A DNA stretch of 64,000 nt. Source: Paragordius varius (Eukaryota > Animalia > Nematomorpha). The stretch spans positions 4,774,001 to 4,838,000 of the forward strand of contig OZ176058.1 in NCBI GenBank assembly GCA_964247055.1, read 5' to 3'. The translations under genes were made by a program, and so were the position numbers. This document shows, piece by piece, positions 10,044-61,762 of the stretch. The stretch's first letter is position 1; each line of letters begins with the position of its first letter. Under the pieces are notes generated by a model. That model ran no database searches. It was given only the letters and a program-made list of their open reading frames with translations, and was not told the DNA's origin.

Positions 10044-10119
10044 TAAATAAATTAATTATATTAAGTTTTAAGAGAAAGTTTATGAAGCCCAGTAAAATTT
10101 ATAAAAAGACAAAGCAGAA

Positions 10120-13100
10120 AGAGTAAATATTTGTTAACAGTTATCGATTGAAGGGTTAACACCAAAAGTTATCATATGATTAAAAGTAGCAAAGAATTAT
10201 CGAATGATCTCGAAAGATTTACTAAAAGTAAGGGCAGTTCCGTTGGTCAACTTCAATTTTTGGCCAAGGTTGATACACTTAGTCATCAAGCAGAGCTTAG
10301 AACAAAACGAAAATTGTGATTGAAAGTCTTGAAAAATAAATTAGGCTTTTGAAATGTATTAAAATTATTTAAGGACAAAACAGAACAAGTAATATTTGTT
10401 GACAGTTATTGATTAAAGGGATTAACATAAGGATGGGGTCAATTTATTAGTCACAGTGGATACACTTATTAGTTATCAAGCAGTCCTTAAAACAAAACAG
10501 GAATCGTGAAATAATATTGAGTAGAGGATAGAATTCGCTATATAACCCAAAAAACATTACACAGCAGAAAAAGTAAGTTTAAAAAGGGTCAATTGAAGGG
10601 GTTAACATATAAAAGTTATCATATGATTTGAAAATTATTAATAGTATGTCTATATAGCTGAAGTTGATACACTTACATGAAGCACTTGAAATTTAATAAA
10701 ATTTTAATATATATATCAATCATAAAATGAAGTTTTATTGTTTGCTAAAACACAGTAAATATAAAAGCAAAGCAGAAAATATTTCAATTTTTATTATAAA
10801 AAGGGATTAACAAAATTGTCAAATGATGAATAATTTACTAATTATATACAAAGTGTGGTTGGTCAACGTTAATTTTTAGCCTAAAATGTATTTTAAATTT
10901 TTCAAATATATATCTCCATTTTTAAAAGGAATAAAAAAGTTATTATATTAATAAAAGGCCACACTCTGTTAAATATATTTTTAGCAATTGATAAGTTTTT
11001 TACCTTTAAAATGCTAAATTTTATCAATTTATATCGCAATTACTTATTTTGCTCCAAAATTAAAAATAAAATAGATGAAATGCCTTTTTTTAAATATTTG
11101 CTTTTTCGTTTATATAATTTAAACAATTTCCTGCATATATCTTTATTATTTTGCCACCTCAAACGATAAATTTTAATCATGATTTACAAATATTTTCCTT
11201 TATTGATTAATTGATACTATATACAGTATATGTACTAATATAAGGCATGAAAACTTTAAACAAATATAATTTTTCTAAACCTAATTTCGAAATACTTTAT
11301 TTTCGCTTGCCGAACGGGTAATAGATATGTTAATTGGTAATGCATTCAATATGTAATATTTTTATACTGAAAAAATTAAGTCTTAAAAAGATTCGTTTAC
11401 TTTTGAATGTCTTTTAGTTTCAACATATGCTCTTTTTACTCACATCTCTTAATTTGGTAACACAAAACGATCATTTATTAAAAATGAAATTTTTATAGTT
11501 AGATGTCTTTTTAACTATTGTGTTGAATTTTTTAACTTTCTTATTATTTTAGCAACCCCAAAATTTATAAAAACATTCGAATATTCATAAATATTTGTCT
11601 TTTAATTTTTTAATATTGCTTGTACATAATTTCATTTTAACTATTGCTTTTTATTACCCAGACCTAAAAAATCCCAAAGACAACGAAAAAGTTCTCAAAG
11701 ATCAACAAACTAAACCCGCTTCAAATGTTGTCCCCTGTAAAAGGAAAAAATGTGATGATGGTAATACTTTATTTGCCAATAATAATCATCATAAAAATAG
11801 CTGCCTTTCTTTAACAAAATCATCAAACAATAGTTTATTACAGCATTTTGACAACTTCTGTACGACAAAGAAAAAAACATCAACAGTGCTAAGTATGACA
11901 CAATCGAGTTGGTCTCACCTACAAAATAATATTGAGTCAATTGAGGGCATTAATAAGCAAGAGTTTTCGAATGATCTCGAAAGATTTACTAAGAGTAAGG
12001 GCAGTGCGGTTGGTCAACTTCAATTTTTAGCCAAGGTTGATAGACTTAGTCATCAAGCCGACCTTAGAACAAAACGAAAATTGTGACAAATAAATAAATG
12101 AAATATATTAAGTTTTAAAGAGATTAATTTTATATAATCCAGTAAAAAATTATAGAAAGACAAAACAGAAAAAGTAAGTATAAAACACACATTTTCAATT
12201 GAGGGTATTAACAAACAAAAGTTATCATATGATTATAAGTAGCAAAGAGTTATCGAATGATCTGGAATGATTTACTAAAAGTAAGGGGAGTGCCGTCGGT
12301 CAACTTCAATTTTTAGCCAAGATTGATAGACTTAGCCCTCAAGCTGATCTTAGAACAAAACGAAAATTGTGATTGATAAATAAATGAATTATAATAAGTC
12401 TTAAAAGTAAAAATTTATATAAAGACAAAACAGAAAAAGTAATTGTATACAACACAATTTTCAATTGAGGCTATTAAACAAAAGTTATTATATGATTAAA
12501 AGCAAAGAATTATCGAATGATCTTGAAAGATTCACTAAAAGTAAGGGCAATGCGGTTGGTCAACTTCAATTTTTAGCCAAGGTTGATAAACTTAGCCATC
12601 AAGCCGACCTTAGAACAAAACGAAAATTGTGATTGATAAATAAATGAATTATATTGAGTCTTAAAAGTATAAATTTTATTTAAAGACAAAACAGAAAAAG
12701 TAAAAAACAATATTGAGTCAATCGTGAAAGGGTTATCACACAAAAGTTATCATATGATTATAAGTTGAAAAAAGTTATCGAATGATCTCGAAAGATTTAC
12801 AAAAAGTAAGGGCAGTGCCGTCGGTCAACTTCAATTTTTAGCCAAGGTTGATAGACTTAGTCATCAAGCAGATCTTAGGACAAAACGAAAATTGTGACAA
12901 ATAAATAAATAATATTGAGTCTTAAAAGTAAAAATTTATATAAAGAGAAAACAGTAAAAGTAAAAAACAATATTGAGTCAATCGTGAAAGGGTTATCACA
13001 CAAAAGTTATCATATGATTATAAGTTGAAAAAGTTAACGAATCATCTGGAAAGATTTATGAAAAGTAAGGGAAGTGCAGTTGGTCAACTTCAATTTTTAG

Positions 13101-15660
13101 CCAAGGTTGATGGACTTAGTCATCAAGCTGACCTTAGAGCAAAACGAAAATTGTGACAAATAAATTATGAGTCTTAAAAGAGAAAAGTTTAGGTGTTTAA
13201 AATGCAGTAAAAATTTTATATAAAGACAAAATAGAAAAAGTAAATATTTGTTAACAGTTATCGATTGAAGGGTTAACCTACAAAAGTTATCTATCATATG
13301 ATTAAAAGCAAAAGAATTATCGAATGATCTGGAAAAATTTCCAAATTTAATTTTTAGCCAGGGTTGATACACTCAGTCATCAAGCAGATCTTAGAACAAA
13401 ACGAAAATTGTGATTGATAAATAAATTAAAATGAGTCTTAAAAGTAAAAAAATTGTTATATAACCTAGTAAATAATTAAGACAAAACAGAAGTAAGTTTG
13501 CGATATTGAGTATGAATGGGTTAACAAACAAAAGTTATCATATGGTTAAAATTAGCAAAAAGTTATCGAATGATCTCGAAAGATTTACTAAAAGTAAAGG
13601 CAGTGCGGTTGGTCAACTCCAATTTTTAGCCAGGGTTGATACACTTAGTCATCAAGCAGATCTTAGAACAAAACGAAAATTGTGATTGATAAATAAATAA
13701 ATCATATTAAGTCTTAAAAGTAAAAATTTATATTAAGACAAAACAGAAAAAGTAAAAAACAATTTAGAGTCAATCGTGAAGGGGTTAACACATAAAAGTT
13801 ATCATATGATTAAAAGCAAAGATTTATCGAATGATCTCGAAAGATTTACGAAAAGTAAGGGGAGTGCCGTTGGTCAACTTCAATTTTTAGCCAAGGTTGA
13901 TAGACTTAGCCATCAAGCTGACCTTAGAACAAAACGAAAATTGTGACAAATAAATAAATTAATTATATTTAGTTTTAAAAGAGAAAAGTTTAGACGTTTG
14001 AAATGCAGTAAAAACTTTATTTAAAGACAAAACAGAAAAAGTAATTTTCATTGAGAGTTATCAATTAAAGGGAGTAAAAAGTGGTTATCGAATGATTCAG
14101 AAAGATTTATCAAAAATATGGCTAACAAATAGCTAATGTTTATACATTTAGTCATCAAGCCGACCTTAAAACAAAACGAAAATTGTGACAAATAAATGAA
14201 TTATATTGAGTCTTAAGAGTAAAAAAATTGTTATATAATTTAGTAAAGCTTTATATGAAGACAAAACAGAAAAAGTAAGTTTGAAACGATATTGAGTCAA
14301 ATGAATGGGTTAACAAACAAAAGTTATCATATGGTTAAAATTAGCAAAAAGTTATCGAATGATCTCGAAAGATTTACTAAAATAAACGCAGTGCGGTTGG
14401 CTAACTTCAATTTTTAGCCAGAGTTGATACACTATGTCATCAAGCCGACCTTAGAGCAAAACGAAAATTGTGATAAATAATTTATTATATTAAGTTTTAA
14501 AAGAAAGTTTATGAAGCCCAGTAAAAATTATAAAAAGACAAAACAGAAAAAATAAGTATAAAACATATTGAGTCAATAGTGAAGGGGTTAACACATAAAA
14601 GTTATCATATGATTAAAGAGTTTTCGAATGATCTCGAAAGATTTACTAAAAGTAAGGGGAGTCCCGTCGGTCAACTTCAATTTTTGGCCAAGGTTGATAG
14701 ACTTAGTCATCAAGCAGATCTTAGAACAAAACGAAAATTGTGATAAATAAATTTATTATATTAAGTTTTAAAAGAAAGTTTATGAAGCCCAGTAAAAATT
14801 ATAAAAAGACAAAACAGAAAAAATGTTTTTCATTGAGAGTTAATTAAAGGGAGTAAAAATTAAGAGGTTATCGAATGATTCAGAAAGATTTATCAAAAAT
14901 ATGGCTAACAAATAGCTAGTTGATACTAGCCATCAAGCAGACCTTAGAACAAAACGAAAATTGTGACAAATAAATTAATTATATTAAGTTTTAAAAAAAG
15001 GTTTAGGCGTGATAAATGCAATAAAAATTTTATTTGAAGACAAAACAGAAAAAGTTTTTGAGCAACGCAATTTTGAGGGTTTTAACAAACAAAAGTTATC
15101 ATATGATTAAAAGTAGCAAATGGTTATCGAATGATCTGGAAAGATTTACTAAAATAAACGAAGTGCAATTGGCCAACTTCTTTTAGCAAATTGATCTACT
15201 TAGTCAGGAAACAGATTTTAATTAACCAAAATTGTGATTAATAAATAAATTAAAATCATAATGAGTCTTAAAAGAGAAAAGTTTAGGCGTTTAAAATGCA
15301 GTAAAAATTTTATATAAAGACAAAACAGATAAAGTAAATATTTAATAACAGTTATCGAGGGGTTAACATACGAAAATTATCATATGATTATAAGTAGCAA
15401 AAAGTTATCGAATGCTCTGGAAAATTTATTTATTAAAATAAACGCAGTGCAGTTGGCCAAATTTTATTTTTGTCAAGAGTTGATGCACTATAAAACATGA
15501 GGCCTTTGGAACAAAATGAAAATTGTAATATTAATTAATTTTATATATTCTTAAAAAATGCCAAACACACTAAAAGATCGTATAAAGACAAGGCAGAAAA
15601 AGGAACCTTATGTTTTTTGAATAAAAGAAAAGGATTAACCAACAGAGTTATCGAATGATC
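10120..15660 (+). repeat. Satellite of about 240-300 bp units derived from the last ~120 coding nt, stop codon and 3' flank of CFDP1
   Basis: tatcgaatgatctcgaaagatttactaaaagtaagggc...acaaaacgaaaattgtga recurs about 16 times (e.g. 10303, 12357, 12615, 12881, 13140, 13398, 13669, 13929, 14171, 14457, 14726, 14949), decaying distally. Confidence 0.95.
10915..12086 (+). pseudogene. Duplicate of CFDP1 intron 2 plus last exon, with a mutated acceptor
   Basis: 10915-11660 parallels 8750-9630, and ORF 11595-12086 repeats exon 3 with two in-frame insertions. The acceptor ttattag|ccaa has become ttattaccca, and the new CAG is out of phase with exon 2. Confidence 0.75.
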
Positions 15661-18900: not shown

Positions 18901-21019
18901 AAGTAAATTTTAAATCATTGTACGAAGCAAAGTTGTTGCCAGGCCTTTAAAATAACTCGTGTTTCGTACAATATCTAAGTAATTATCAAAATTATATAAA
19001 GAAAAAATTGAATTTAGTATAAAGAGACAGTAAAAATTATAATTAAACGTAAAAGCATTTTGAAAGTCAATCATACTTGTTTTAAACAATATTAAATCTT
19101 ACGAGTTATATAGTACAACAAAAATTAAATTTAGCATAATGATTAAACATAAAAACTAAGCCGACCATATTTTTTGAAACATATGTTTTTAATTATTGTT
19201 ACAAGTATTATCGATTTAACAATCAATTATATATTTTAAAATGGTAATTTAATATAGTTATTAGGAATCATAAGCTTTGATAATTGACTTTGTATTTTTT
19301 AGCTTTTTCTTATATCAAACTATATATTTACAATAAATACTATATTAATTTGTTTTAAGATTAAAAGGAAAAAGACAAACTTTTCCAAAAGAAGCCAAAG
19401 CCATGCCATTTAAACATTATGTTTTAATAAAATACTTTGTTTTGTTTTGGTATGTCAAATGGGTTGTAAAATAAAAGTTATTATATTCAAAATTGTAATG
19501 ATATAGTTTATGTAAGAAATATCAAGTTTTTTGTACTGTCTGAAAAAAATGTGTTTTACAGTCATGTATCTTTTATTTATTAAAAATTTATTTGCTCCGT
19601 TAAATGGGTACAAATTTTTGTTAAAGAATGGAAAAAACAAGAGCATTATAGTATTAACAATATCATAATAGTATAAAAATTACCATAGGCTCTTGTTTTT
19701 TCCATTCTTTAACAAATATTTATATCCATTAAACAAAAAAATATATTTTTCATAAAATAAAGGATACTTGACTGTAAATTAAAATTTTATCTGTATAATT
19801 TCATTGTTTACCGTAAAAAACGTAAAAACAGATTATATATATATGAATTTAGCTTCTCCTTTCATAAATTATACAATTTTCAACGCAAAACGATGAGTTA
19901 TATATAATAAAACGTGAAAATTACTAATATTTTTATTAAACAGCCATACTTGCTTGATTTATATTACCGAAAGGATTACAATTATAAAATATATAATAAC
20001 AAAAAGTGTATAATTATTATATAGAAAGGTTAGGTTCGAAAAAGTATGCTTGTCTTTTAAAAAATTGTATTTTAATAAAATGATTATTCGTCCTCTAGTT
20101 TTACGTTTTGACTATGCATTGAAAATTGAAATTATACGAATTAAGCGTTAAAGGTAGGCATCTTTACCTAAAAGACAACCATATTTTTAAAAAATTGACT
20201 TATTTTAATATAACTCAACATTTTTGGTGGAAAAATAAAATATATATAATGATATAATTTTAAAGATGCTCATTTGAATTTCGAAATTGTAATCATATAG
20301 TTTATGTAAAAAATTGGAAGGTTAAAAAATATATGGTTGTCTTTTAAATAAATATTTGTCTTTATATTTTTACCTCTGTCCGTATATTATCAATTTTTAC
20401 TGTACCTATGTTATCTCTATTCTATATCTCGAGTAATATAAATTAAGGTTTAAAATAGGTTGCAAAAAAACTTTTTTTTCGTATAATTTTAATTATTTTA
20501 TAGTATAAATATTTTACAGTCATGTATCCTTTATTTTATCAAAAATTTATTTGTTTTTTCGTTAAATGGGTGGATATTAATATTTGGTAAAGAATGGAAA
20601 AAACAAGAGCTCTATGGTAATTTTTCTACTTTTTTAATGAATATGATATTGTTGTTAATACCATAAAGCTTTTGTTTTTTCCATTCTTTACCAAAAATTT
20701 GAACCCCATTTAACGAAAAAAAATAAATTTTTGATAAAACAAAAAGGATACATGACTGTATTAATTTTACTGTATTTTCGGCGTTTATTCCCCCTTGTTC
20801 GGGGTAAAAAGAATTATCATCATAAACATCAAATTGGTCAAATGTTTGAGGATTTCGTGCTGAATTTCTCCATTTTTTCCTCAATAAATTTGAATTAATT
20901 TTTTTTCCCAAAGATGATTGGCTTTTCACAATTCCATGATTTTTAATCGAAATCATTGTTGTAAAAATAATGTGCAGGATGATAAATATAGATTTACATG
21001 TCTTTAATACAGTAGTCAT
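15954..21019 (-). CDS. Putative secreted, highly basic orphan protein, 193 aa, 2 exons
   Basis: Exon 21019-20771 (83 codons, hydrophobic N-terminus IFIILHIIFTTMI, RKKWR, ends ACA|gtaaaa) joins in phase 0 to exon 16286-15954 (aaaatag|ELFQRPGP...TKLN*, open for 110 aa). No family was recognised and intermediate exons cannot be excluded. Confidence 0.6.
16290..19000 (-). repeat. Array of the orphan gene's exon 2 acceptor plus first ~35 exon nt, interleaved with MITE arms
   Basis: gttggggccag.cctctgaaataactcctattttgt recurs at about 16780, 17190, 17710, 18120, 18520 and 18930; a further dispersed copy is at about 22285. Confidence 0.9.
19559..19774. mobile_element. MITE with CAGTCATGT termini and TA flanks (same ends as the transposon at 27284)
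   Basis: TA|CAGTCATGTATC...GGATACTTGACTG|TA, with long internal inverted arms. Confidence 0.85.
20517..20758. mobile_element. MITE with CAGTCATGT termini and TA TSD; decayed paralog at about 24249-24480
   Basis: TA|CAGTCATGTATCC...GGATACATGACTG|TA; inserted 12 nt downstream of the orphan gene's first donor. Confidence 0.9.
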
Positions 21020-24490: not shown

Positions 24491-24745
24491 TGTATTTTCG
24501 GCGTTTATTGGTTAACCTCTTTGTTCGGGGTAAAAAGAATTATCATAAACATCAAATTGGTCAAATGTTTGAGGAATTCGCGCTGAATTTCTCCATTTTT
24601 TTCGTCGCAATAAATTTGAATTAATTTTATTTCCCAAAGCTGATTGGCTTTTCACAATTCCATGATTTTTAATCGAAATCATTGTTGTAATAGTAATGTG
24701 CAAAATTATAAATATAGATTTACATGTCTTTAATACAGTAGTCAT
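24491..24745 (-). pseudogene. Upstream duplicate of the orphan gene's first exon, within a ~700 bp direct duplication (20430-21100 versus 24150-24830)
   Basis: Near-identical peptide (MTTVLKTCKSIFIILH...) with an in-frame TAA at 24512-24514 before the conserved ACA|gtaaa donor. Confidence 0.75.
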
Positions 24746-27283
24746 GGTTGATTTTATAACATATTTAAGTAGTTAGTAAATATAACCAACAATCAATATT
24801 ATTTAAATGATTAACATAGTAACTTAATATTTTTAAATTGGTAAAATTAGTATGTAGTATAATTTATGTAAAGAATAAAAACTAAAAAATAATACAGTAA
24901 AATTTAATACGGACAAAACCTAAAAATATAAAGAAAATATTTTTTAAAAAGACAACCATACTTTTTAAATCTTGATTATTTTCGATATAAATGGTAATTT
25001 TAAATTAAAAGGTATTAAATACGGTTGTAAATAGGAAACCCCATAAATTTTATATTTTGTAGTTTAAAACAATGAGGTATATTGAAATAAAATAAAATTT
25101 TAAAATGGGGTTGTCTTTTAGAAAAAAAATTTGTCTTTATATTTTTACGTTTTGTCCGTATAATTTCAGTTTTTACTGTAAGTTAAAACTCTCAATTGGA
25201 AATTAAAGTGCAGTATAATTTATGCAAAGAATAAAAGTTAAAAAATAATACAGTAAAATTCGAAATTATACTATGGACAAAACGTAAAAATATAAAAACT
25301 CTTAAAGACAACATCCCTTTTTTAAACTTCATTTTTAAAAATATAAATTATTGTTTTAAATTGTAAAGTATAAAATTGATATGTATATTGGACACAATCA
25401 ATTATATATATTTTTATAATTGTAATTATATAATAAATATGAGAAAAATTAAGGTTTATATTGTCTTTTAGAAAAAAATATTTGTCCGTATATTTTTACT
25501 TTTTGTCCGTATAATTTCAATTTTTGCTGTATATTTCTCCATATTGAATTTTGATATTATTAACGCAAACCCATCGTTTTGAGTCACGAAATTAATATAA
25601 AATATAACCTTAAAATTTAAAAAACTAATATTTTTAAGAATACCATTAATATGGTTGTCATTTTTAGATATTGTTTTATCTGCTGATTCTTATATTTTTA
25701 AAGCATGTTGATTTAAAGGTGGTCCGTACCAATTTATTAAAATTAAAATTTACAGACAAAACTTAAATCATAAAGAAAAAGGAAAATAAAAATTGAAATT
25801 ATACGGACAAAATGTAAAAATATAAAGACAAATATTTTTTTGTAAAGACAACTATACTTTTAAAATCTTAATTATTTTATATAAAACTCATTGTTTTGAA
25901 CTGTAATTATGAAATAAAGATGTTAATTTGTAAAACAATCAATTATTAAATTTACAATTGAAATTAAACAATTATTATAGGATATTCAAGGTTTTAATAA
26001 GTAGATTGTTTTTGGAAAAGAATGTCTTTATATTTTTACGTTTTGTCCGTATAATTTCAATTTTTATTGTATGTTTCAAAACACAGCCGTACTTTTTTGC
26101 GCCTTAATTTTTTCTATATATTAATTAGTAAAAATTGTATAATTGATTGTTTGCATTTTAAAACAATGAGTTATATTTTAATAAAAATTTCAAAACGGCA
26201 GCCTTTAAAAAAATATTATCGTATGGTTTTGCGTTTTGAGTACATAATTTAAATTTTATACTATTTATATTTTATTAAAACAGCCATATTTTTTAGATAT
26301 TTTTTATAATGTGCTTATCGTTTGTCACGAAATATAAGGAATATTAAATTTATACAGAGAAATAAAAACTTAAACATAAAGAACATACAGTAGTAACTAA
26401 AATTATACGGACAAAAAGCAAAAATATACGGACAAATATTTTTTTAAAAATCATACTTATATAAACACTTTAATTTTATAAATTATATGATTACAATTAT
26501 AATATATAATTTATTGTGTCACCAATATACATATCAATTTAATACTTTACAATTAAAACCCAACAGTTCATATTTTTAAAAATAAAGTTAAAAAGTATGG
26601 GGTTGTCTTTTGGAAAAAAAATATTTGTCTTTATATTTTTAGGTTTTGTCCGTATAATATCAAAATTCACTGTACTTTTAATATGTTATTATGTCCAAAA
26701 ATATAATCTTTTACTTATTAATATTTTGTTTTTATAATATATTGTCCATTATTTTTGTTTCGTTGTATGGGCTCAGGATATAATTGCTAATTACCGCTTT
26801 ATCGATTGTGTGGGTATTTTACAGTAAAAATTGAAATTATAAGGAAACACAAAACGTAAAAATATAAAGACAAATATTTTTTTTATAAAACACAACCATT
26901 CTTTTTGTATCTTGATTAATTTAAATTTAACTCATTGTTTTAAACTGCAAAATATAATATAGACCTAATAATTGATAACAGAATCAATTAGGAATGTTTT
27001 TTTACGATTGTAATTTAATAATTATTTTTATAGGATAAATTAAGGCAGTTTAAAAAAGTATGGTGGTTGTCTTTGGAAAAAAAATTGTCTTTGTATTTTT
27101 ACGTTTTGTCCATCGTGTAAATTCAATTTTTACTGTAATAAAGCATAAGAAGTGTTTGTAAAAGTCGGACTTTACACCTAAAATTTCACAAAATCATAAC
27201 GAAAATATAAATATACAGCAAAGTTTCCATATATATTTTTTTTCAAAAAACAACCTTATGTAATATTTTCCAAATATCAATTA

Positions 27284-29244
27284 CAGTCATGTCTATATAG
27301 AATTGTCTTTTTTTTTTATTTAAATGATTATAATTTTTTTTTAATTGTTTTGATGTTTGATATGTCAACTTTCAACATGCGCATTTTTAAGCCTTAAAAT
27401 AATAATAGCCTATTTAGTGTAAGAATTTTTAATTTATAATTAAAAGATATTGCAAAATATTATTCTTGATGCACAACATGCACATATTGTAATTTTTATC
27501 TTTTGTAAAATATTAATTATAAAATTTTATTAATAAAGTTTAAACACACATAACCAAAATATAATTTAAAAGATAAAAATATTTATTGATTATAATATTT
27601 AAATAAATTTATAATTGTTTTCATTTTCTAGGGGTTTTCTTTGCATACATTCCAACAAAATATGTGAAGAAAAATTATAATAATTTTTTAGATTTTTTTC
27701 CCTTCTCTCTTCGCAAAGTCTTGCAATTTTATTATGTTGCTCTAGAGGGGTACTACACCGGGGTTTTTTATCATATTGATGTTTAATCTCATGAAAAAAA
27801 CATTCAATGGGATTCAGTTGTGGCGAATATGGAGGTAAATAAACTATTTTATTCCTTAGGTCACCTAACACCGCGGCTTTGTGAATAGGTGCATTATCGC
27901 AAACTATTATTGAACTTTCAGGAATTCTTGTTAAACATTCCGTCAAAAAAATTCGAAAATCATCGCCTCTAAAGGCGCCTTCTTTTGTTCTGTAATTAAT
28001 AACTCCCTGACAACCAATCATACATATCAATGAAACATTTTTTCCTAAAATAAATTCAAATTTTACCTTTGTTAAATCCCTCTACAATAGGAGATTTGCC
28101 CTTTGGAGCTCTACCCCATATATTTGTAAGTTTCAAACTGAAGCCTGACTCATCAATAAAAAAAACTTTTTCCTGTGGAATATCTTTCACCAATCTGGCA
28201 TAATTATAACGCTTTTCTATATTCTCTGGGGTGTTTCGTTCCCGAGGTTGTAAAATACACCTCTTTCGAGTAATTTCTGAATCCGAGAGAATTTTGTAAA
28301 TAGTTGCTCTGCATACTTTAATATGGTCTGGTATTTGTTCCATTATTTCATCGATTGTTAATTCACAATCATTGTTTATTAATCTTTTGACAGCATCTAT
28401 TATTTCTGGATTTCTGAATTTGTTACGCCGACCAGATTTATTTCTATCAGTAGAATTCCCAAGAATTATTTTTCTTCTTAATATATTTATAGATGTTAAG
28501 GACATATCAAAATAATCCAAAAAATAATTTGAGGGTTTTTCCAAATTTTTGGGATCAAAAAATAATTTTTTAGCTCTATCTATTTTTTCCTTATTCCAAA
28601 AATTATGTTCTAAAATTTAAAAATATTAATACTTTTATGTTTTATTTTTTCACGAGATAATTCATTTTCATTCAATGGAACATCCAAATCAGATACTACG
28701 AATTGTTATTTTTAAATACTTGAAGACTCTTCACTTGTATCCGATTCAAAAGTATAAACTGAGGGAGCTATGTTTTCCTTTAATATTGGATTTTGTTCTG
28801 AATTTTTATTTTTTAATATAAACCTTCAAGTACACTAGCTGCCGAGCAAAGAAGAAATAATGGGTTATCGTTGATATTCATAATTTTTAAAAATAACTCT
28901 AGATTTATGATTTATTTCTTTATATATATAGAGATTAATTGGACATCTGCTTGGGTTTTCTTATATATTTTAAGTGCATGTTAAAAACCCCTAGAAAATG
29001 AAAACATATATTAAACTTGGTTATCATAAATTACATGCGCATGTTGTAGATAAAATGTTCAAGAATAATATTTTGCAACATCTTTTAATTATAAATTAAA
29101 AATTCTTACACTAAATAGGCTATTATTATTTTAAGGCTTAAAAATGCGCATGTTGAAAGTTGACATATCAAACATCAAAACAATTAAAAAAAAATTATAA
29201 TCATTTAAATAAAAAAAAAAGACAATTCTATATAGACATGACTG
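27284..29244 (-). mobile_element. Full-length IS630/Tc1-like DNA transposon, 1961 bp, long TIRs, TA TSD
   Basis: TA(27282-3)|CAGTCATGTCTATATAG...CTATATAGACATGACTG|TA(29245-6). The outer ~185 bp of the TIRs are almost identical, and weaker similarity continues to about 27640/28981. The empty site with a single TA is seen in the mirror arm near 63630-63645. Confidence 0.97.
27599..28881 (-). CDS. DD30E transposase, 395 aa, 5 exons separated by 26, 24, 23 and 22 nt introns
   Basis: Exons 28881-28824, 28797-28720, 28695-28633, 28609-28067 and 28044-27599 total 1188 nt and give one open frame from ATG to TAA. Motifs: FIDESG, WGRAPKG, DNAPIH, LPPYSPQLNPIE. Confidence 0.92.
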
Positions 29245-29406
29245 TAATTAATTTACAAGATATCCAATTGATTGTACAATTTACATTTCATTTAATACCA
29301 GTTAAAACGATATATTATATTTAAAAAACAAGTGTTATTTTTCATTATTTTAATGTAAAAAACATTACAAAAAATTTTAAATAAGAAAATTTACAATTCT
29401 ATAATA

Positions 29407-29576: not shown

Positions 29577-30303
29577 TAATGCCACGTACAGAGAACTTAA
29601 AATAAAAAAGCTAGCTAGAAATGAATGAATGTTTTACATAAGACGCTCTATTATGTAATTGGCCAGTTTGTAAATTCAATTTTCCCAGTAAAATTTATTC
29701 TAATTTTGTTTTTAATTGCAATTCAACATATCATATAAATTTGAAGGTTTATGTAGAATCGAAAACATTAAAAAAATATGTCGTCTGCTTTATTGAGCAA
29801 AAGATAAACCAAATTAGTTTCAACTTTCTATGTTCTGTCTTTATAATTTTAAATATTACTGTAAAAACTGAAATTACACGGACAAAACGTAAAAATATAA
29901 AGACAAATATTTTTTTCTAAAAGACAACCATACTTTTTAAATCTAAATTTATATCGATATAACTTATTGTTTTAAACGGCAAAATGTGAAATAGAGATAC
30001 ATAATACTAACATAATCAATTCTATATTTTAGTAACTAATTAGCTCATATGGGAAACATTTATGTTTTAAAAAGTATGGTTGTCTTTTAGATAAAAATAT
30101 CTTTAAATTTTCACGTTTTGTCCATATATTTCAAATTTTACTGTAATATAAGACAACATTCAATTATTTCAATATCATAATGAATTCAAAAAAATGATGT
30201 TTTAATATACAAAACAGGAATAACTAGATAAAAACATTTCAAATTTTTTGTATTTATTTCATTTTTACTGTATAACAACATCAATCAAATAAATAGGAAT
30301 ATA

Positions 30304-33300
30304 TTATAATTTCAAAATAATTAATGCCACGCACAGGAGTAAAACTAAAAAAGCCAACGAGAAAATGCATAAAAGTTTTCCATAAGACGCTCTGCTATGC
30401 AAAGTGGCCGCTTTAGTTAATTCGGTTAATCCTGTGCTTATGGTTTGTGTCGAATGTTCAATACTGTAATCTATACGATCTAACGTTGAACCCTATATAT
30501 GTATACAGTAAAAATTGAAATTATATAAAATTGCTACATTTTTATAAAATTTAAAAGAATATAAAAGAATTTTTTTTAGAGAAACCCGCTGAACTTTTTT
30601 TATACTAGATTTATTTAAAATTGTTCGAGGGTAAATTTGAATAGTAAATGGTATATATGTGTGTCTGTGTAAAATAAGCCCTCAAAAAAATATAATTGTA
30701 ATTTGACAAAAATCTTTGCTTATGTTTTCTTATAATTTAAATTTTTGTATAATATTTACAAGTTAGTTTATAGTTTAATTTATATTTTACGTTTGACAAA
30801 TAGTACTGTAGTAATCTAATTACCCCATAAATTCATTTAATTTTAACTAAATTATAATTGGGCAATAATAATATAAATTATTTTTCGGTATTTTTAAACC
30901 TATTTTTCAACTAATAAATTTAATATTACCTAACTAACTTTAAATATCTATGAACAAAAAAAGGTAAAAATATGCACAATAAGAGATGATTCTTAAATTA
31001 TTTTATAGTTTTATGTACTAAAAAAATTGTATTTTAAAAATATTTTAACAAAAAGATTATAATAACATTTTACCTGATCGTTTACCAATGTGCCAATATC
31101 GTGGAAAAGAGTATTTAAATCTTGAATAGATTGCACAAGACTGTTAATTTCTTTTTCCTTGTGCCTGTAATAACTCAATTCCCCATCAATGTCTGAAAAG
31201 AGTTTCTCCCTTTTTTGTAAGGATGTCTATATTTGGTAAATTATAAATAATTATTAATAAATTTTTTTTAAACATAATAATAATGTTTTTATTTGGAAAT
31301 TTTAAAAACTATCAAAAATTGTAAAAATTGTGTATATAGAAAAGCATGAATAATGAAATGTTTAATTTGAAAATAAAAAATATGAAAATTTTTGGAAAAA
31401 TATAATTAATCTAAATTTAAATATTTAACTTGTTTATAATTAAAATTATATTATATTTCCTAAATAATATTGATTCAATTTAAAAATTTTTAAAACTTTT
31501 AATACAATATAAATTTTTGAATAAATGTAGTATATAGATGGCGTTTATTTTTATTACTGCTAATTATTTAAAACCTTAAATTTTTTATAAACTAAACTCA
31601 TTATGAATTAGAAAAGGATAGATAGAAATAATTGCCTCAAACAATTTAATTAGATATTTCACACATTTGTGAATTAATTGGTTTTTCTTGAATAATTTTT
31701 TGAAATAAAAAAATTTGTCTTTATATTTTTACGTTTTGTCACTTCTATACATTCAAGTTTACTGTATAATTTAAAAAAAGCTTATATTTAAAAAACTATT
31801 ATATTATATTTCCTAATAATATTGTTTAAATTTGAAATTTTTTAATATTATAGTTAAAATTATCAAAAAAAATGTTATTTTTTAAAAAATTATTAATAAT
31901 ACAAATATCTTGTAATCCATATAATTATAAAGAAAAAATAAGTTTATGAAATCAATTATAGTTAAATTTACCAAAAAAAATGTTATTTTTAAATTATTAA
32001 CAATACAAATATCTTGAAATCCATATAATTATAAAGAAAAAAAAGTTTATGAAATCAATTATATACTATAAATTTCAAAATAAAATGTTTTATTTGAAAC
32101 TCGTAATTATAAATTAAAAAAAGAGTATCCAATATTTCGATATAAACTATTTAAAACTAACTTTTTGAAAGCGTTCAAAATTTGAGTTTAAGGAGTTATC
32201 AATTGATTGTTGATGGTTTATTATATCCATTTCAGACATTATAACATTATTATCGCTGGGGTGTTGAGAATTCGACGAAGTCAATTTATTTTCCCACAAA
32301 ATTTTTGTATTGATAGTTTCATCGTGTTCCTAAATAGTTTTTTTTATTATTACAGTAAAAATTAAAAGCAAAATACGTAAAATATAAAGACAAATATTTT
32401 TTTGTTTTCTAAAAGACAACCAACTCCATACTTTTTATTTAATATACCATTTACAATTCAAATCTACCGCGTACAACTCAAAATGACCCTCGAAACAATT
32501 AAAATCACTCTTGTAAACAATTCGAATTCACTCTTCAACTATTTGAATTCACCCTTGAACAATTCAAATTCACCCTGCGTACATTTCAAATTCACCTTTG
32601 ATCTATTAAATATCACCCTTGAACAATTTAAATTCACCCTTGTGAAATTCGAAATGATCCTTGAACTATTCAAATTTACCTTTGAACTATTAAATATCAC
32701 CCTTTTTAACATTTCGAATTCCCCCTAAACCAAATTATGTGTTTTGTTTAATATTAAAAATTACCTTTATTTTTTAATATTTTTCAACATATGAAATTGT
32801 GTTTAAAATTAATATAATGCTGAAAAAATATGAAACTATGTCCAAAAAAAAATATTTCATATTAATGATGAGTTATGTTAGATTGAAAGAAAACACATAA
32901 TATATTGTTCGAGGGTGGATTCGGATTGTAAATGGTATATACCTTAATATATTTAAAATATTACTTATTGTGTTTTGGGTTGCAAAATAAAGATTAGTTA
33001 TGTAAATTGTGTTAATCCACTCAATTATATATCATTTTAAAATAAAATTTCAAGTAGATTATAAGGGGAAAATTTCAAGGTGTGTAAAAGTATGGTTGGT
33101 TGTCTTTTTAAGAAAAAATTATTTATTGTCTTTATATTATTACGTTTTATAATATAATTACAATTTTTACTGTAATATTTTCATGATTAACATTTGCTTT
33201 TGTGGTTGTTTTATAATCCATGGTGGGGGTCGTATTGTATTGTTCATACAGTGTTTTAAATCTTTCAATTTCTAAGTAAATAATATTTATAAAGTTTATT

Positions 33301-36300
33301 ACAATTAATATTATTTAATATTAAACTACAAATGTTTTTAAGACGCCATACATTTATTTTTTCATTTAAATTTTAATATACCATTTGCACTTCAAAAGTG
33401 TCCTTAAACACTTCAAATTGGTCCTTGAACATTACACTTCAAGTTGGTTATTAAAATTTTTAAGTTTTGATTTAACCATAATTTTTACATATGTTTTTTA
33501 ATTTAATATTTTTTAACCTAATTCTCTTTATATATTTTATTCCTTAAAAACAAATAAAATCCAAAAACCACTTTTTTGTCTCAAACTAATTTTTTCCAAT
33601 TTAACCAAATTATTACCTTATGAATGTTTGAAATGAAAACTGTATTATTTAACCCAGAAAACTTTTTTGATTAGATGTTATAATCTTATAAATATCCAAA
33701 ATAATTTTAAGAAATAATAAATATATACGGTTTCTGAATTATTAAAAGTTAATATTGATTTAAAATTATGTTAATATATTGAAAATATGTCAAAAACGAT
33801 AAAGTAGATGAATGATTTACGATTTAATTGATAAAAATAAAAAAGAGAACAAACAAAGTCAAAGGACCAACTTAACGTGCAAATAGTATATTTAATATTT
33901 TTTCCAACCTTATTAAGACAAAAGTAAAAACATGAAAGGCGTTTTATTTGGTTTAAAACTCTTTATATTTAATTCACTCTAAAATTTAATAAAATTCGAA
34001 ATTTCATTTTTAAACTTTAAGATAAGTGGATTGACTTCGACGAAAAGACAAGGTTAAATCACACAATTTTTTAGCTGAAAAGTTGTTATATTGCGTTTGA
34101 GTTGCATTTCCTTAAGGCATTTTTTCAACAGAATTTGTTTCAAAACTCAAAAAATTAGTTATTTTATTCACTTTAAAACATTTTCAAAATTTCAATTTGG
34201 AAAATTTGAAAACTTTAAAACACCTTTAAGATAAGTAGATTGACTTCGGCGAAAAGACAGAATTATATATATAATGTTTAAATTGCATTTTTTGAAGCGT
34301 TTTTAAACAGAATTTGTTATAAAACTCAAAAATTAGTAATTTTATTTACTTTGTAACATTTAAAAACTTTAAAGCAAAACCTTTAAGGTAGGTGGGTTGA
34401 CTCCGTAGAAAACTCATATTACGATTAAATTGCATTTCTAAAGCGTTTTTTCAACAGAATTTGTTTTAAAACTCAAAAAATTCAAAAGTTTTTAAAGCAA
34501 AACCTTTAAGATAGTGGATTGACTTTGTCGAAAACTTAGGGTTAAATCACATTATTGTTTAGCTATAAAAGCTGTTTTTTTCGCTTAAGTTGCATTTCTT
34601 AAGCGTTTTTTTAACAGAATTGTTTCAAAACTCAAAAAAATTTCGAATTTCAAAGCAAAGCCTTTAAGATAAGTGGATTGACTTCGTCGAAAACTCAAGG
34701 TTAAATCACACGATTTTTTAGCTGAAAAAGTTGTTTTTTGCGTTAAATTCCATTTCTTAAGGCGTTTTTTCAATAGAATTTGTTTTAAAGCTCAAAAAAT
34801 TATTTTTATTCAATTTTAAAACTCAAAACTTCTTTAAACCTTTAAAATAAGTGGTTTGACTTCGTCGAAAACTCAAGGGTAAATCACACAATTGTTTAGC
34901 TAGAAACGTTGTAATATTGCGTTTAAGTTGCATTTCTTGAAGCGTTTTTATGAAGTATTTGTTTTAAAACTCAAAAAATTCGAATTTCAAGACAATCCTT
35001 TAAGATAAGTGGATTGACGTCCCAAAAGTAGCTGAAAAGGTTGTTTTTTGCGTTACCAATCAAGAAAATTCAAAAACTTAAAAGGAGAACCTTTAAGGTA
35101 AGTGGATTGACTTTGTCGAAAACTCAAGGTTTTACACAATTTTTAAGCTAAAAAAATTGTTTTTTTGCTTTTATGCATTTCTTTTTTCAACAGACTTTGT
35201 TTTAAAACGTTAAAATTAGTTATTTTATCCGCTTTAATACTTCGAAATTTTAATTTTAACCAGAAAAAAAGGAAACCTTTAAGGTAAGTGGATTGACTAC
35301 GGCGAAAAGACAAAGGTAAATTACACATTTTTTAGCTAAAAAGTTGTTTTATTGCGTTTAAGTTGCATTTCTTGAAACGTTTTTATTAAGAATTTGTTTA
35401 AAACTCAAAAATTAGTTATTTCATTCCTTTTAATTTTTAATTATTTTAAACAAAAAAATTGAAGGCAAAACCATTAAGATTAGTTGATTGACTACGACAA
35501 AAAGACAAGAAGTCATACAATTGTTTAGATATAAAAGTTGTTTTCTTGCATTTAAATATATTTCTTGAAACAGAATTTGTTTTAAAACTCAAAAATTAGT
35601 TTTTTTATTCACTTTGAAAATTTTTAAAATTTCAATTTTCAGAAAACAAAGGAGAACCTTAAGATGAGTGGATTGACTTCGTCGAAAACTCAAGGTTAAA
35701 TCACACGATTTTTTAGCTGAAAAAGTTGTTTTTTGCGTTAAATTCCATTTCTTGAAGCGTTTTTCAACAGAAATTGTTTTAAAATCAAAAAATTTATAAA
35801 TTTCAATTTCCAGAAAACTTTAAAGCAAAACCTTTAAGATAAGTAATTGACTTCGTCAAAAAGACAAGGTTAAGTCACACAATTGTTGGACTAAAAAAAT
35901 GTTTTTTGCGTTTAAAATGCATTTCTTGAAGCGTTTTTCAACAGAAACTCATGAAATTCAGAAATAAACCTTTAAGTTAAGTGGATTGACTTCGACAAAA
36001 AGTCAGAAATAAGTCACACAATTGTTTGCTTTTCTTAAAACTATTTTAAGCAAAATTTGTTTCAAAGTCAAAAAAATATTTTTTTAATGATTAAAAATTT
36101 CAATTTCCACAAACCTTTAAAGCGAAACCTTTAAGATAAATAGATTGACTTCCTCAAAAAAGACAAGGTTAATCCACACAATTGTTTAATTAGGAAAGTT
36201 GTTATATCACGTTTAAGTGGCAATTTTAAAGCGTTTTCAACAGAATTTGTTTTAAAACTCAAAAATTAGTTATTTTATTCACTTTGAAAATTCAAAAACT

Positions 36301-39241
36301 TTAAAGCAAACCTTTTAAGATAAGTAAATTGATTCCGTCGAAATGTCAAGGGTAAATTACACAATTTTTTAACTGAAAAAGTTGATTTTGCGTTTAAGTT
36401 GCATTTCTTTAAGCTTTTTTATAAGGAATTCGTTTTAAAACTCAAAAAAATTCAAAATTTCAAAACTTAAACTTTCAAGATAAGTGGATTGACTTCGTCG
36501 AAAAGACAAGGTTAAATCACACAATTGTTTAGCTAGGAAAGTTGTTTTATTACGTTAAAATGCATTTCTTGAAGCGTTTTTATGAAGAATTTGTTTTAAA
36601 CTTTCCAGAATATAGAAGCAAAACCTTTAAGATAAGTGGATTGACTTCATCGAAAAGACAAGGTTAAGTCACACAATTGTTGAACTAAAAAAGTTGTTAT
36701 ATTGCGTTTGCATTTGTTGAAGCGTTTTTCAACAGACTTAGTTTTAAAACTCTATTTTAACACTTTGAAACATTTTCAAAAATCAATTTCCAGAAAACTT
36801 AAAGCAAAACCTTTAAGGTAAGTGGATTGACTTCGACGAAAAGACAAGGTAAGGTCACACAATTGTTTCGCTAGAAACGTTGTTATATTGCGTTTGAGTT
36901 GCATTTCCTTAGGGCTATTTTTGCCTTCTTCTGTAATGGTGTTGTTATTGAGTTGATGTTGTTTTTGATTATTTATGCGTTTGACTAGTGATTGACAATG
37001 TTGTAACATCTATATTATATATATATATATATATAAATCTAAACCCTTAAACAATGTAAATTCACCTTTGATAATACTTTTTAAAACATTTTTACCTGTA
37101 ATAATTTATTCACTCTTCTTTAAAATATCAAGAATATTGGGGACATTTGTTAAAGTATAAATCAAAAAGGAATTATATAAAAAAAATTCAAAAAAGTATT
37201 TGTCTTTAAGAGTTATTTGCATTTCCTTTTTTATTTTTAACTTTAACATTCTGTTATTTTTAATTGTGTAATTTTTTTTAAAAAAAAAACTTTTTTTTCC
37301 GATATAAGGTTAACCCATACAATATACGTATCAATTCTCACAAAAATCTCAATAAATTCCATTTTTTTATCATTTTTTATTTTTTTGATAATACTTTAAC
37401 ATTTTCACCTGTATTTTTGTATTTACCTGAGTTATTTGTTTACTCTTCTTTAAAATATCAAGATTATTGGGGACATTAATTGAATATAAAATCAAAAAGG
37501 AATTACATAAAAAAAATATTTGTCTTTAATATTTTCATATGCTTTTTTATATATTTTTAACTTTAACATTATTTTTAATTGTGTAATTTTTATAAAAAAA
37601 ACTTTTTTTTCAGATATAAGGTTAACCCATACAATATATATTCTGCCAAAAAAATCTTAATAAATAGTCATTTTTATATTTTTTTAAATTTTTTGATAAT
37701 ACTTTAACATTTTTACCTGTAATATCTTAAATCGTGTAGTTTTTAAAAAAACATTTTTTTAAACATAACAATAACCCATAAAATATATGTTACATTTCTG
37801 ACAAAAAATAACAATAAATATCAATTTTTTGGACATTTCCAAATTTTTTAATTTTCGAAACATTTTTAAAACATTTTACCTGTAATATCCATTTTGTAGT
37901 TTTTTAAAAAAACTTTTTTTCAGATATAAAGATAACCCATACAATATGCGTGACAATTCTCACAAAAATCTCAATAAATATCCATTTTATATATTTTTAC
38001 AAATTTTTTGATTTTTTAAACATATTTACCATTTTTTAATTGTGTAGTTTTAAAAAACTTTTTTTCAGTAGATAACCCATACAATATATATGTCAATTCT
38101 CACAAAAATCTAAATAAATATCAATTTTTTTAGCAAATTTTTTGATTTATAAAAGTTTTTAGGAATTTCACCTGTAAAATCCTAAATCGTGTAGTTTTTA
38201 ATAAACTTGTTCAGTAATAAAAATAACCCATACAATATATTTGATAATTCTCATAAAAACCTCAATAAATATCAATTTTTTGGATCTATTTTCCAAATTT
38301 TTTGATTTATAAAAGATTTTTAAAAAATTTTTACCTGTAATATCCATAATTATGTAGTTTTAAAAAAACCATTTTTTAGATATAAAGATAACCCATACAA
38401 TATTTGTATCAATTCCCACAAAAATCTCAATAAATATCCATTTTTTTGGATTTTTTTGATTTTTATGATTTTTAAAACATTTTTACCTGTAAAATCCTAA
38501 ATCGTGTAGTTTTTAATAAACTTGTTCAGTAATAAAATCTCAATAAATATCCATTTTTTCCAAATTTTTTGATTTTAAAACATTCTTAAAAGATTTTTAC
38601 CTGTAATTTTCAATAATTTACCTGAGTTATTTGTTCACTCTTCTTTTGAATGTCGAAATTATTATTGGTGACATTTATTTTAGTGGAAAATAAAACAATA
38701 AAAAAAATTCAAAAAAATTTTTGTCCTTAAGAACACATTTAACATTTTTAACTGTAAATTATTGAAAAAACCATTTTTTCAGATTTAAAGATAACGTATA
38801 CAATATACGTAACAATTCTCACAAAAATCTCAATATATATCCATTTTTTTAGATTTTTTAGATTTTTATGATTTTTAAAACATTTTTACCTGTAATATCC
38901 ATAATTATGTAGTTTTTGAAAAAGACAATATATGTAACAATTCTCACAAAATTCTCAAAAAATATCCATTTTTATACATTTTTTCAATTTTTTATATTTT
39001 TTGATACCTTTTTAAACATTTTTTAAAACATTTTTAATTGTAATCTTGTATAATTTACCTGAGTTATTTGTTCACTCTTCTTTTGAATGTCAAGATTAGG
39101 ATTATTGGGGACATTTATTTGATTGGTATTATAAGTGGTATCATCTAAAGTTGGCATACTAACTTTCTTAACATGCAACGCATCTAATTCAATAATTTTT
39201 TGACCAATTTTTTCAATTCCATAGTTTACCTTAAATAGAGA

Positions 39242-39275
<34 letters not shown>

Positions 39276-42200
39276 CATTTACAGTTCGAATTTAACCTTA
39301 AACGATTCAATTTTCCCTTGAACAATTCGAATTCACCCTTGAACAATTCAAATTCACCCTTAAACAATTCAAATTCACCCTTAAACAATTCGAATTCACC
39401 ATCGAACATTTAAACAATTTAAATTTACTTTTGAACCATTCGCCTTGAATAATTTAAATTCACTCTTGAACAATTCATATTCAACTAAATAAATTAGTGT
39501 TTAAGATCAAAAATTACTCATATATATATTTTAAAAATTAAATTTCGTTTAAAATTAAAAATGAATTGTAAAAATAAGGAACTAAGCCACATAAAGATAT
39601 ATTTTATATAAATGATAAGTTATACTAGACTGAAATTTCATAATTTATATTTAGGTTGAATTTGAATTGTTCGAGGGTGAATTTTATTTGTTCGAGGGTG
39701 ATTTGAATTGCAAATGGTATATGTATAAAAGATTTATTTAAATAGATATATTAATATAATATATAAAATAATTTATGTTACATTTTAATTATTTTGAACT
39801 TAAACTATATAGAAACATTATATGTATATAAAATTAAACTAATGAAACCATTTTGAGATGGAATAATAATATATACCATTTACAGTTCAAATTCACCCTT
39901 AAACAATTCAAATTTACCCTTAAACAATTCAATTTCCCCTTGAACAATTCAAATTCACTCTCGAAAAATTCGAAATCAAATACCCTAAAATAAATTACTT
40001 TTTTTAAAATCAAAAACTACCTATATATATATACCATTTACAATTCAAATTCACCCTTAAACAATTCAAATTTACCCTCAAATAAAATATATGTTTTTTA
40101 AGATTAAAAAATTACCTATGTTATATATATTTTTTAAAAAAATAATAATGAAAAAAATAATAAACTATACCATAAACATTTCATATTAATAATGAATTAT
40201 ATTAGACTGAAATTTCATAATCTATTTTTACGGTGAATTTGAATTGTACATGGTATATATAAAAGATTTATTTAAATAAATATATATTAATATGATATAT
40301 TATAATTTATGTGAAATTAGAATTTTGATTTTAAACTATAGAAACATTATAAAAATTGTTGTATATATAAAATAAAACTAAAGAAACCATTTTGAAATAT
40401 GAATTCAAATTCACCCTTAAACAATTCAAATTCACCCTTGAACAATTCAAATTCACCCTTAAACAATTCAAATTCACCCTCGAACAATTCGAATTCGCCC
40501 TTGAACAATTCAAATCCAACCTAAATAATTCAAATTCGCCCTAAAATAAATTATGTGTTTTTTAAGATTAAAAATCACCTATATATTTTTAAAAATAAAA
40601 CTTGGTTTAAAATAATACTATAACATAATAAATTAAGCCACATAAATATAATCCAGATTAATGATAAGTTATAGACTGTAATTTCACAATTTATTTTTAG
40701 GGTAAATTTGAATTGTTCTAGGGTGAATTTGAATTGTAAATGGTATATTTTGATCATTAAGATGTGTGAAAAGATATATACCTTTTTAAAACATAATTGT
40801 GTTTTTTGATAAATTTTGTCGTTATAACCAAAAAAAATATTAAACTCTTTTTAGTTTACTTTTTATCAAATTTTTACTGAAAAACTAATATAAAAGGCAA
40901 ACAAACCTTATTTAGGATTTCCAGCCCCCAGAAAAAATACAGTAAAAATTGAAATTATACGGACAAAACGTGAAAATATAAAGACAATTATTTTTTTCAA
41001 AAAGACAACCATACTTTTTTAAACCTTATTTTTTATAAATATAACTTATTGTTTTATACTACAAAGTATGATATAGAAATGTAAATTGGTAACATAATTA
41101 AAAATGTATTTTACGATTGTAATTAAATGTTTTTTATAGGATAAAATTAAGATTTAAAAAGTATGGGGTTAAAAAAATTTTCTGTATATTTTTACATTTT
41201 GTCCGTATAATTTTAATTTTTACTGTAAATTTATATGTTAAAACAATAATTTTTTGACAAATATTTTTTATTATATCTTGTTGGAACAATTCACACCCTA
41301 AGAATTGAAATTATACGGACAAAACGTAAAAACATAAAGACAAATTTTTTTTTAAAAGACAACCAACCATACTTTTCAAAACTTAATTTATACTATATAA
41401 AAATCATTTATTTACGATTGTAAAATATATAATTGATTGTGTTACCTATATATTTATATCATAGTTTACAGTGTTAAAGAATAAATTTTATTTAAAAAAA
41501 ATCAAGATTAAAGTAAGTTTGTCTTTTAAAATATATATTTGTCTTTATATTTTTACACGCTTTGTCCATAGTATAATTTCAATTTTAATGTAATTAACCC
41601 TCCTAAAAATAAATTATATGTTTTCATAATAAGAATTATTTCTTTATAGTCATCAGTTTATCGTTCTTTTCAGTATTATGATATTATTAATTTTAAACGA
41701 AATTTTAGTTTTTTAAACTAATAATAAAAATATATAAAATATACGTAATTTATAATAATTAAATTAAATATGATTAATTTTAGGGTAAATTTGCGTTGTT
41801 AAAGGGTTAATTTGAATTGTTCAAGTGGGAATTTATATAGCTCAAAAGTGAATAATAATTGTTCAATGTGAATTGTTCAAGGGTGAATTTGAATTGTTTA
41901 AGGATAAATTTGAATGACGAAGGGTGAATTAAAATAGCTCAAGGGTGAATTTATAAAATAGTTCGAGAGTAAAATTGAAATAGTTAGAGAGTGAAATTTG
42001 AATTGTTAGGGGGTAAATCTGCATTGTTCAAGGGTGAAATGAATTGTTCAAGGGTGAATTTGAGTAAATTTGAGGTATAAATGTTATATATATAAAATAA
42101 ATAATAAATCTTTTAAAAAAACACAAGTCCATTCTTTTTAAGTCAAAATATAAATATCTTTTTACTTTTTTTACAAATTTTCCCTGTAAAATTATAAAAT

Positions 42201-46150: not shown

Positions 46151-46716
46151 CTTCGATTCAAATTGGGGTATTTAAATACCCCAGACAAATTTTAAATTAA
46201 TATTTAAAAAACTACTGAAGAAAACGGTCCCAATTTAAATTTATGCATCTATCCTGATAATTATTATATAAATTTGACAAAATAACTTGATAAAATTTTG
46301 TTTTGAAAAAAAGCTCCATCTCAAACTACTTCGACGACATTTTTATTTTACAAAATTTTTGCAAAATATCGTCTTTATTTAATTTTAAGGGTAAAATTAA
46401 ATTTTTTGTTTAAACTACATCTAACATTGATAGCGAAAAAAGCGGTTTGTTTTGTATTAATTATTAATTTTACCATTTCACACACGCATCACGTTGACGA
46501 AAGTTTTACCTTTAGGAATTAGCTTAAAATAAGTAATATCAAGTATTTTTAAATAAAATTTTTAATATAATTCGGTTCATTAATGATATATAAGTGTAAA
46601 ATTTTGCCATGGTTTCGATTCCTTCTTTTTAAAGTATTTGATTTTAAACAGGCCTGGGGTATCAAACTACCCCAATTTGACTTGAAGGACTAAAATGAGT
46701 GTGTTGTATCCAAGTG
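46149..46716. mobile_element. TTAA-flanked MITE (piggyBac-like target), copy A
   Basis: TTAA|CACTTCGATTCAAATTGGGG...CCAAGTG|TTAA, 568 bp. Confidence 0.88.

Positions 46717-61676: not shown

Positions 61677-61762
<86 letters not shown>

Follow-up and report, generated by a model that had tools for sequence, protein, structure and literature searches.

We analysed a 64,000-nucleotide stretch of the genome of the nematomorph Paragordius varius (GenBank assembly GCA_964247055.1, contig OZ176058.1, positions 4,774,001 to 4,838,000 of the forward strand; hereafter the window, to whose first letter all positions refer). The window is rich in repeats, has a G+C content of ~22%, and contains at 27284-29244 a structurally complete transposon of 1,961 bp of the cut-and-paste type. 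We judge it fairly likely, from the sequence evidence, that this element is an autonomous IS630/Tc1-type transposon whose transposase gene carries four genuine GT-AG micro-introns of 26, 24, 23, and 22 nt. The original prediction, also made from the DNA, was of a transposase interrupted by four ultrashort spliceosomal introns, all in phase 1; we find that this remains the best explanation of the sequence, with strong support for intron 4 and moderate support for introns 1 to 3.

To build the gene model, we read the minus strand of 27300-29200 and spliced it by script. Four GT-AG segments were found at the predicted coordinates, and all four are in phase 1 (cumulative exon lengths 58, 136, 199, and 742 nt). 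Their removal gave the predicted 395-residue open reading frame (ORF), a coding sequence of 1,188 nt that runs from the ATG at 28881 to the TAA at 27601-27599 without an in-frame stop. As had been noticed, a list of ORFs presents the gene as broken: it holds fragments of 162 and 143 residues only, and the unspliced pieces span three frames. The parts of the gene, all on the minus strand, are as follows:

28824..28881, minus strand: exon 1, 58 nt, beginning with the start codon ATG at 28881-28879
28798..28823, minus strand: intron 1, 26 nt, GTTTAT...ATTCAG, phase 1, inner G+C 4.5%
28720..28797, minus strand: exon 2, 78 nt, symmetric (phases 1-1)
28696..28719, minus strand: intron 2, 24 nt (a multiple of three), GTATTT...TCGTAG, phase 1
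28633..28695, minus strand: exon 3, 63 nt, symmetric (phases 1-1), with no variant listed among other copies
28610..28632, minus strand: intron 3, 23 nt, GTATTA...TTTTAG, phase 1; its removal joins KHKK to HNFWNKEKIDRAKK
28067..28609, minus strand: exon 4, 543 nt, with both predicted helix-turn-helix (HTH) units and the first catalytic aspartate, D219 (FIDESGF)
28045..28066, minus strand: intron 4, 22 nt, GTAAAA...TTTTAG, phase 1, between the first and second catalytic aspartates
27599..28044, minus strand: exon 5, 446 nt with the stop codon TAA counted in, bearing D297 (CDNAP) and E328 (NPIE)

All four segments begin with GT and end with AG, and removing exactly these four restores the frame. 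At each junction there is exactly one GT-AG solution of 20-30 nt; between 196 and 493 deletions of 15-40 nt could restore the frame at a given junction, of which only one or two are GT-AG. The segments also differ from the exons in composition (inner G+C 6.3% versus 30.8%, p = 1.4e-7). The one segment whose length is a multiple of three was predicted to introduce an in-frame TAA if retained; it in fact introduces two, with frame 2 reading ...SSSI*K*QF.... None of the 395 spliced codons is an in-frame TAA or TAG, and the ORF terminates at TAA. Thus, the standard genetic code applies, and a ciliate host or a ciliate code is ruled out by the same codons, by the TAA stop, and by the closest relative, which is in the horsehair worm Gordionus.

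Intron 4 is well supported as a real intron by comparison with related sequences, and our confidence in it is higher than that in the four together. We compared the spliced protein with two sets of relatives. The best single relative, LOC135930258 of Gordionus sp. m RMFG-2023, is annotated as a protein (at L001:2890-3522; 38% identity over 211 residues). In a tblastn search of this Gordionus sequence, residues 128-338 of the spliced protein aligned in one frame with no gaps, straight through junction 4, where KGKNVSLICMIG was paired with KGKKVSVLCTIG. The second set came from an exhaustive HMMER search that returned 2,556 relatives; we took the best 150, which include 74 uninterrupted ORFs of full length (300-400 residues). 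Against the spliced protein these 74 homologues are free of gaps at junction 4, where they share the motif [NS][KR]G.N[VI]SL at a near-constant distance from the first aspartate. The corresponding NKGKNVSL of the element is present only once intron 4 is removed, and the continuous reading NKGK|NVSLICMIG across the junction, which had been predicted, was recovered. Two other ways of reading this junction were tried and rejected: a 1-nt frameshift with the segment kept adds seven residues found in no homologue, and the one remaining alternative among short GT-AG segments (19 nt, 28085-28067) destroys the NKG of the motif. One variant copy in a public sequencing run has four changes inside intron 4, with the GT, the AG, and the length preserved; at 27969-28173 the variants listed for that run include no further one.

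The same comparison bears on the suggestion that the element may record recent intron gain, and supports it for intron 4. Neither the Gordionus sequence nor any of the 74 full-length homologues has an interruption at this position. Because its relatives are uninterrupted at the site, intron 4, at least, is most simply read as gained within the transposon lineage.

The predicted spliced product has three parts. Exons 1-3 encode a predicted acidic N-terminal extension of 66 residues that lies 5' of the point at which most relatives start; exon 4 would contribute the two HTH units and D219, and exon 5 would contribute D297 and E328. The columns of D219, D297, and E328 are conserved in 73, 74, and 73 of the 74 homologues, respectively, and the exon-4 region could be aligned with the N-terminal halves of these proteins. 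Exon 5 matches Pfam DDE_3 (E = 4.5e-17). The NCBIfam IS630 profile NF033545 matches the exon-4 piece at profile positions 44-173 and the exon-5 piece at positions 183-297, and because the second range follows closely on the first, the halves are collinear with space for only a few junction residues. Scored separately, the two pieces of the unspliced gene reach 36.2 and 59.6 bits, against a cut-off of 100 bits that applies to a whole protein; the homologues P0010 and P0053 score above that cut-off. A protein-database search with the exon-5 piece gave four matches (best identity 46%), and the same search with the exon-4 piece gave no match. The spacing between the second aspartate and the glutamate is 30 residues in the element and in the Gordionus copy, and 34 (DD34E) in most relatives.

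For introns 1 to 3, the argument runs through the reading frame. Exon 4 has no ATG until the middle of its first HTH unit, and therefore an upstream exon is needed. The ATG at 28881 is the only upstream ATG that reaches the exon-4 frame through at most three GT-AG segments of 20-30 nt. A path of this kind, starting with ATG and at least 200 nt long, arose by chance in 1.5% of dinucleotide shuffles and in 2.15% of natural 449-nt segments of the window. Composition follows the same boundaries, with a G+C content of 24-38% in exons 1-3 and 0-15% in the interiors of introns 1-3. At the exon 3/4 junction, KHKK|HNFWNKEKIDRAKK (KHKK|HNFW) aligns weakly with the homologues' basic RKKR arm and their first helix. 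No frameshift of 1-2 nt can substitute for intron 2. At junctions 1, 3, and 4, such a frameshift would be another possible way of bringing the frames together. Homology cannot validate introns 1-3, because these are located upstream of the starts of most relatives.

Other copies of the element provided a further line of evidence. Six public sequencing runs (X1-X6) under four coded organism labels contain 70-86% of the 31-mers of the element; near-identical copies under four labels may reflect related species, relabelled samples, or mixtures of host and parasite. The fragmentation of contigs and the presence of several variant lineages in these runs indicate that the element is multi-copy. We placed contigs of X3, X4, and X6 on 27470-29058 (1,589 letters). 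Near-identical contigs of all three runs carry all four segments, and a joined, intronless DNA form was found in none of their contigs at a likeness of at least 85%. Among the variants listed, 9 sites fall in the 95 intron nucleotides and 27 in the 1,188 exon nucleotides (odds ratio 4.5, p = 0.0008). Within 28495-28878, the substitutions listed for near-identical contigs number 5 in 73 intron nucleotides and 1 in the other 311 (p = 0.001). Intron 2 has, among the variants listed, three substitutions and a 5-nt deletion inside it in other copies, and this deletion is the sole indel listed in a near-identical copy.

The element around the gene is that of a young DNA transposon of the IS630/Tc1/mariner superfamily, in the Tc1/IS630-like DDE clade with D-D-30-E spacing. 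Of the characters that define the superfamily, a TA target-site duplication, terminal inverted repeats (TIRs), and a DDE/D triad in an RNase-H-like domain are present, and exon 4 holds a candidate for the N-terminal bipartite HTH domain. The TIRs are 186 nt each and identical at 185 of 186 positions, with the sole mismatch at position 166; they begin CAGTCATG, so that the element as a whole reads CAGTCATG...CATGACTG with TA on both sides. The features outside the coding exons are as follows:

29245..29246, no strand: TA target-site duplication, 5' side; the letters read CATGACTG then TAattaat
29059..29244, minus strand: TIR on the 5' side as transcribed, 186 nt, from a repeat search and a comparison of the arms
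28919..28930, minus strand: TATA-box-like run TATATATATAAA, beginning 49 nt 5' of the ATG; putative function
27582..27587, minus strand: AATAAA hexamer resembling a polyadenylation signal, beginning 12 nt past the stop codon; putative function
27284..27469, minus strand: TIR on the 3' side as transcribed, starting CAGTCATGTCTATATAG; the arms 27276-27469 and 29059-29252 match at 99%
27282..27283, no strand: TA target-site duplication, 3' side as transcribed; the letters read caatTA then CAGTCATG

We propose that transcription probably starts behind the TATA-like run and ends at the AATAAA, and that splicing of the four micro-introns would then yield an mRNA for an active transposase of 395 residues. 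An additional inverted repeat of 31 nt (90%, 27608-27638 and 28984-29014) lies inside the TIRs, with one arm in the final codons of the transposase ORF and the other in the 5' untranslated region. This repeat may be the leftover of longer TIRs or an additional binding site.

Several observations weigh against four working introns. Exons 1-3 have no detectable homologue, with most relatives beginning near the start of exon 4, and our moderate confidence in their coding status rests on the logic of the ORF, on composition, and on the distribution of variants; the variant entries from other copies are the listed ones and are not independent of each other. The Pfam matches of exon 4 are both weak and below their cut-offs (HTH_Tnp_Tc3_2, E = 0.0034; HTH_32, E = 0.0053). 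In the main contig of X4, the intron-3 acceptor reads AA instead of AG (plus-strand change C>T at 28610, with a further change at 28612), and because of this change the main X4 copy cannot use intron 3 as modelled. A putative RNA run under the same species label (X7) gave zero coverage of 27470-29058, and none of the runs that contain the element is recorded as RNA. Finally, the sole host gene seen in the window, a duplicated syntaxin resembling STX16, has only long introns between the exons found here.

These observations can be read in more than one way. It is possible, though we think it unlikely, that only intron 4 and perhaps intron 3 are real and that the chain of exons 1-3 is a chance path through AT-rich DNA, in which case the true 5' end would be different or lost and the product truncated or inactive. 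The missing homologues of exons 1-3 and the X4 acceptor fit this account, and 19-26% of controls did contain an ATG path of some kind leading into the exon-4 frame; paths that matched the real one in length, however, occurred in just 1.5-2.2% of them, and exon 4 would still offer no ATG before the middle of its first HTH unit. The contrast in G+C between exons 1-3 and the interiors of introns 1-3 and the placement of five of the six listed substitutions of 28495-28878 in intron nucleotides also count against a chance path. We consider it less probable still that the gene is a dead pseudogene, its four segments being insertions of an ordinary kind or nonsense-bearing mutations with an accidental likeness to GT-AG introns, and the element non-autonomous and moved in trans by an intact relative. 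ORF scanners do show the gene as broken, the zero coverage in X7 means that no transcript was found there, and the frameshifts of 1-2 nt that could reconcile junctions 1, 3, and 4 would be in keeping with decay. Against this, all four interruptions are GT-AG segments of 22-26 nt whose exact removal restores the frame, just one or two of the hundreds of frame-restoring deletions at each junction are GT-AG, and removal at junction 4 restores the motif that the 74 homologues share without a gap. Near-identical copies in three other runs keep the segments, with no intronless DNA form among them, and because its TIRs are identical at 185 of 186 positions, the copy is not old enough to have acquired four disabling insertions independently.

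A removal of the segments from somatic DNA, in the manner of the internal eliminated sequences of ciliates, rather than from RNA, appears very improbable. Their sizes resemble those of short ciliate eliminated sequences. However, the segments end in GT...AG and not TA...TA, no DNA contig lacking any segment was found in the three runs, and the host is an animal; to our knowledge, no animal has been described that precisely excises segments so small. We retain the reading of four spliced micro-introns as the preferred one.

The four introns themselves give some indication of how they may have arisen. Introns 1 and 2 agree at 17 of 19 nt (p = 0.0016 by shuffling, uncorrected for the six pairs), a weak hint that the two may have a common origin. 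Exons 1 and 2 show no significant likeness at their ends (p = 0.48). We found no similarity beyond chance between the introns and their flanking exons, and tandem duplication of the flanks was rejected on this ground as a source of the introns. No copies of the four introns were found elsewhere in the window at three or fewer mismatches, so that at the scale of the window they are not a dispersed introner-like repeat. The window offers a contrast in an uninterrupted long interspersed nuclear element (LINE) ORF of 1,070 residues (56682-59894, minus strand; Exo_endo_phos, RVT_1, and a PHD-like finger). An uninterrupted ORF is expected of a LINE because it copies itself through spliced RNA, whereas the introns of the transposon can travel from copy to copy because the element moves as DNA.

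In Paramecium, tiny introns with a length that is a multiple of three are depleted or bear stops and are surveyed by nonsense-mediated decay. The comparison with the stop-bearing intron 2 is an analogy only, the host here being an animal; moreover, there is a single intron of such a length in the gene (n = 1), and stops are to be expected anyway in sequence of 6% G+C. More tentatively, and with considerable doubt, the DNA transposons of this genome could constitute a dated record of ongoing micro-intron gain, in which four introns of 22-26 nt were gained after the split from intronless relatives, introns 1 and 2 perhaps by copying, with a possible tie to spliceosomes capable of handling introns below 30 nt that would limit horizontal spread. 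That the element would be unlikely to work after horizontal transfer, as the original prediction had it, is a reasonable inference.

Among known systems, the nearest are the Tc1-family transposons Tc1 and Tc3 of Caenorhabditis elegans and Minos of Drosophila hydei, each with one short transposase intron of ~40-60 nt. The element described here resembles them in superfamily, in its TA target and TIRs, in its DDE transposase with a predicted N-terminal bipartite HTH, and in what would be a host-style intron carried as DNA; it differs in having four introns, of 22-26 nt and all in phase 1, three of them in an extra N-terminal extension, and in the spacing of 30 rather than 34 residues between the second aspartate and the glutamate. 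The IS630 and eukaryotic IS630-like DD34E transposases (NF033545; DDE_3) are alike in that the profile matches both halves of the protein collinearly and the triad is conserved, but they are uninterrupted single ORFs, mostly with the 34-residue spacing. The Gordionus protein LOC135930258 is the closest relative found, likewise D-D-30-E and from a horsehair worm, but has no interruption at the intron-4 position or anywhere in residues 128-338; this copy has an in-frame stop upstream and appears degenerate. The Drosophila P element, likewise a DNA transposon, has a splicing-regulated transposase and is comparable in that it relies on splicing by the host to make this enzyme, as we infer for the present element. 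The P element belongs to another superfamily, and its regulated, tissue-specific splicing has no counterpart observed here.

Introns of comparable size are found in host genes of other lineages. GT-AG introns in the range of 15-30 nt occur as micro-introns in dicyemid mesozoans (PMC6736024, PMC2222250) and as tiny introns in ciliates such as Paramecium and Blepharisma (10.1101/2022.05.02.489906), whereas here they are carried by a mobile element, and the animal is of a different phylum. Mapping of tiny introns requires aligners with a lowered minimum intron length (10.1101/2022.05.02.489906). A search of the literature on the introns of hairworms (Nematomorpha) and of Tc1/mariner elements found nothing describing such a case: transposase introns are already known, but four introns below 27 nt in an animal transposon were not found in the searched literature. 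If the segments are indeed spliced out, annotation that relies on ORFs mistakes this genome's active transposons for pseudogenes. The copies being young and numerous, the occurrence or lack of introns among them could be used to time intron gain in a micro-intron animal lineage and to dissect its mechanism, and the element provides a simple case in which to test whether mobile DNA is restricted to its host by micro-introns.

We also noted several features of the surrounding window. A large inverted duplication (30298-32849 on the minus strand and 54953-62573 on the plus strand) carries the exons of the STX16-like syntaxin; a SNARE exon lies at 62379-62564 (Pfam SNARE, E = 1.8e-8), with its mirror copy at 30307-30492 (94%). 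The plus-strand copy of the duplication is broken by the LINE, and the transposon lies ~1 kb past the 3' end of the minus-strand syntaxin copy. Positions 1-2000, which are richer in G+C, possibly represent a fragment related to the LINE. Satellite-like arrays occupy 9879-15500 as well as 33977-36923 and 51868-53729, with units of ~265 nt and ~160 nt, the second array occurring in each arm of the inverted duplication. A repeated peptide is common to two ORFs, at 9618-10043 and 11595-12086, and two ORFs on the minus strand at 20612-21019 and 24512-24745 share the N-terminus MTTVLKTCKSIFIILHI; neither pair has a Pfam match, and the latter resembles a duplicated small gene or a repeat-borne ORF. 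A foldback of ~1.7 kb at 46200-47887 has several inverted arms of 93-98%. Finally, a repeat resembling a miniature inverted-repeat transposable element is present in at least 36 copies across the window (for example 25110-25207, 41299-41382, and 29862-29945); its two families, D4 and D5, have termini of the type TACAGTAAAAATTGAAATTATACGGACAAAACG and represent a Tc1/mariner-like family distinct from the element studied here.

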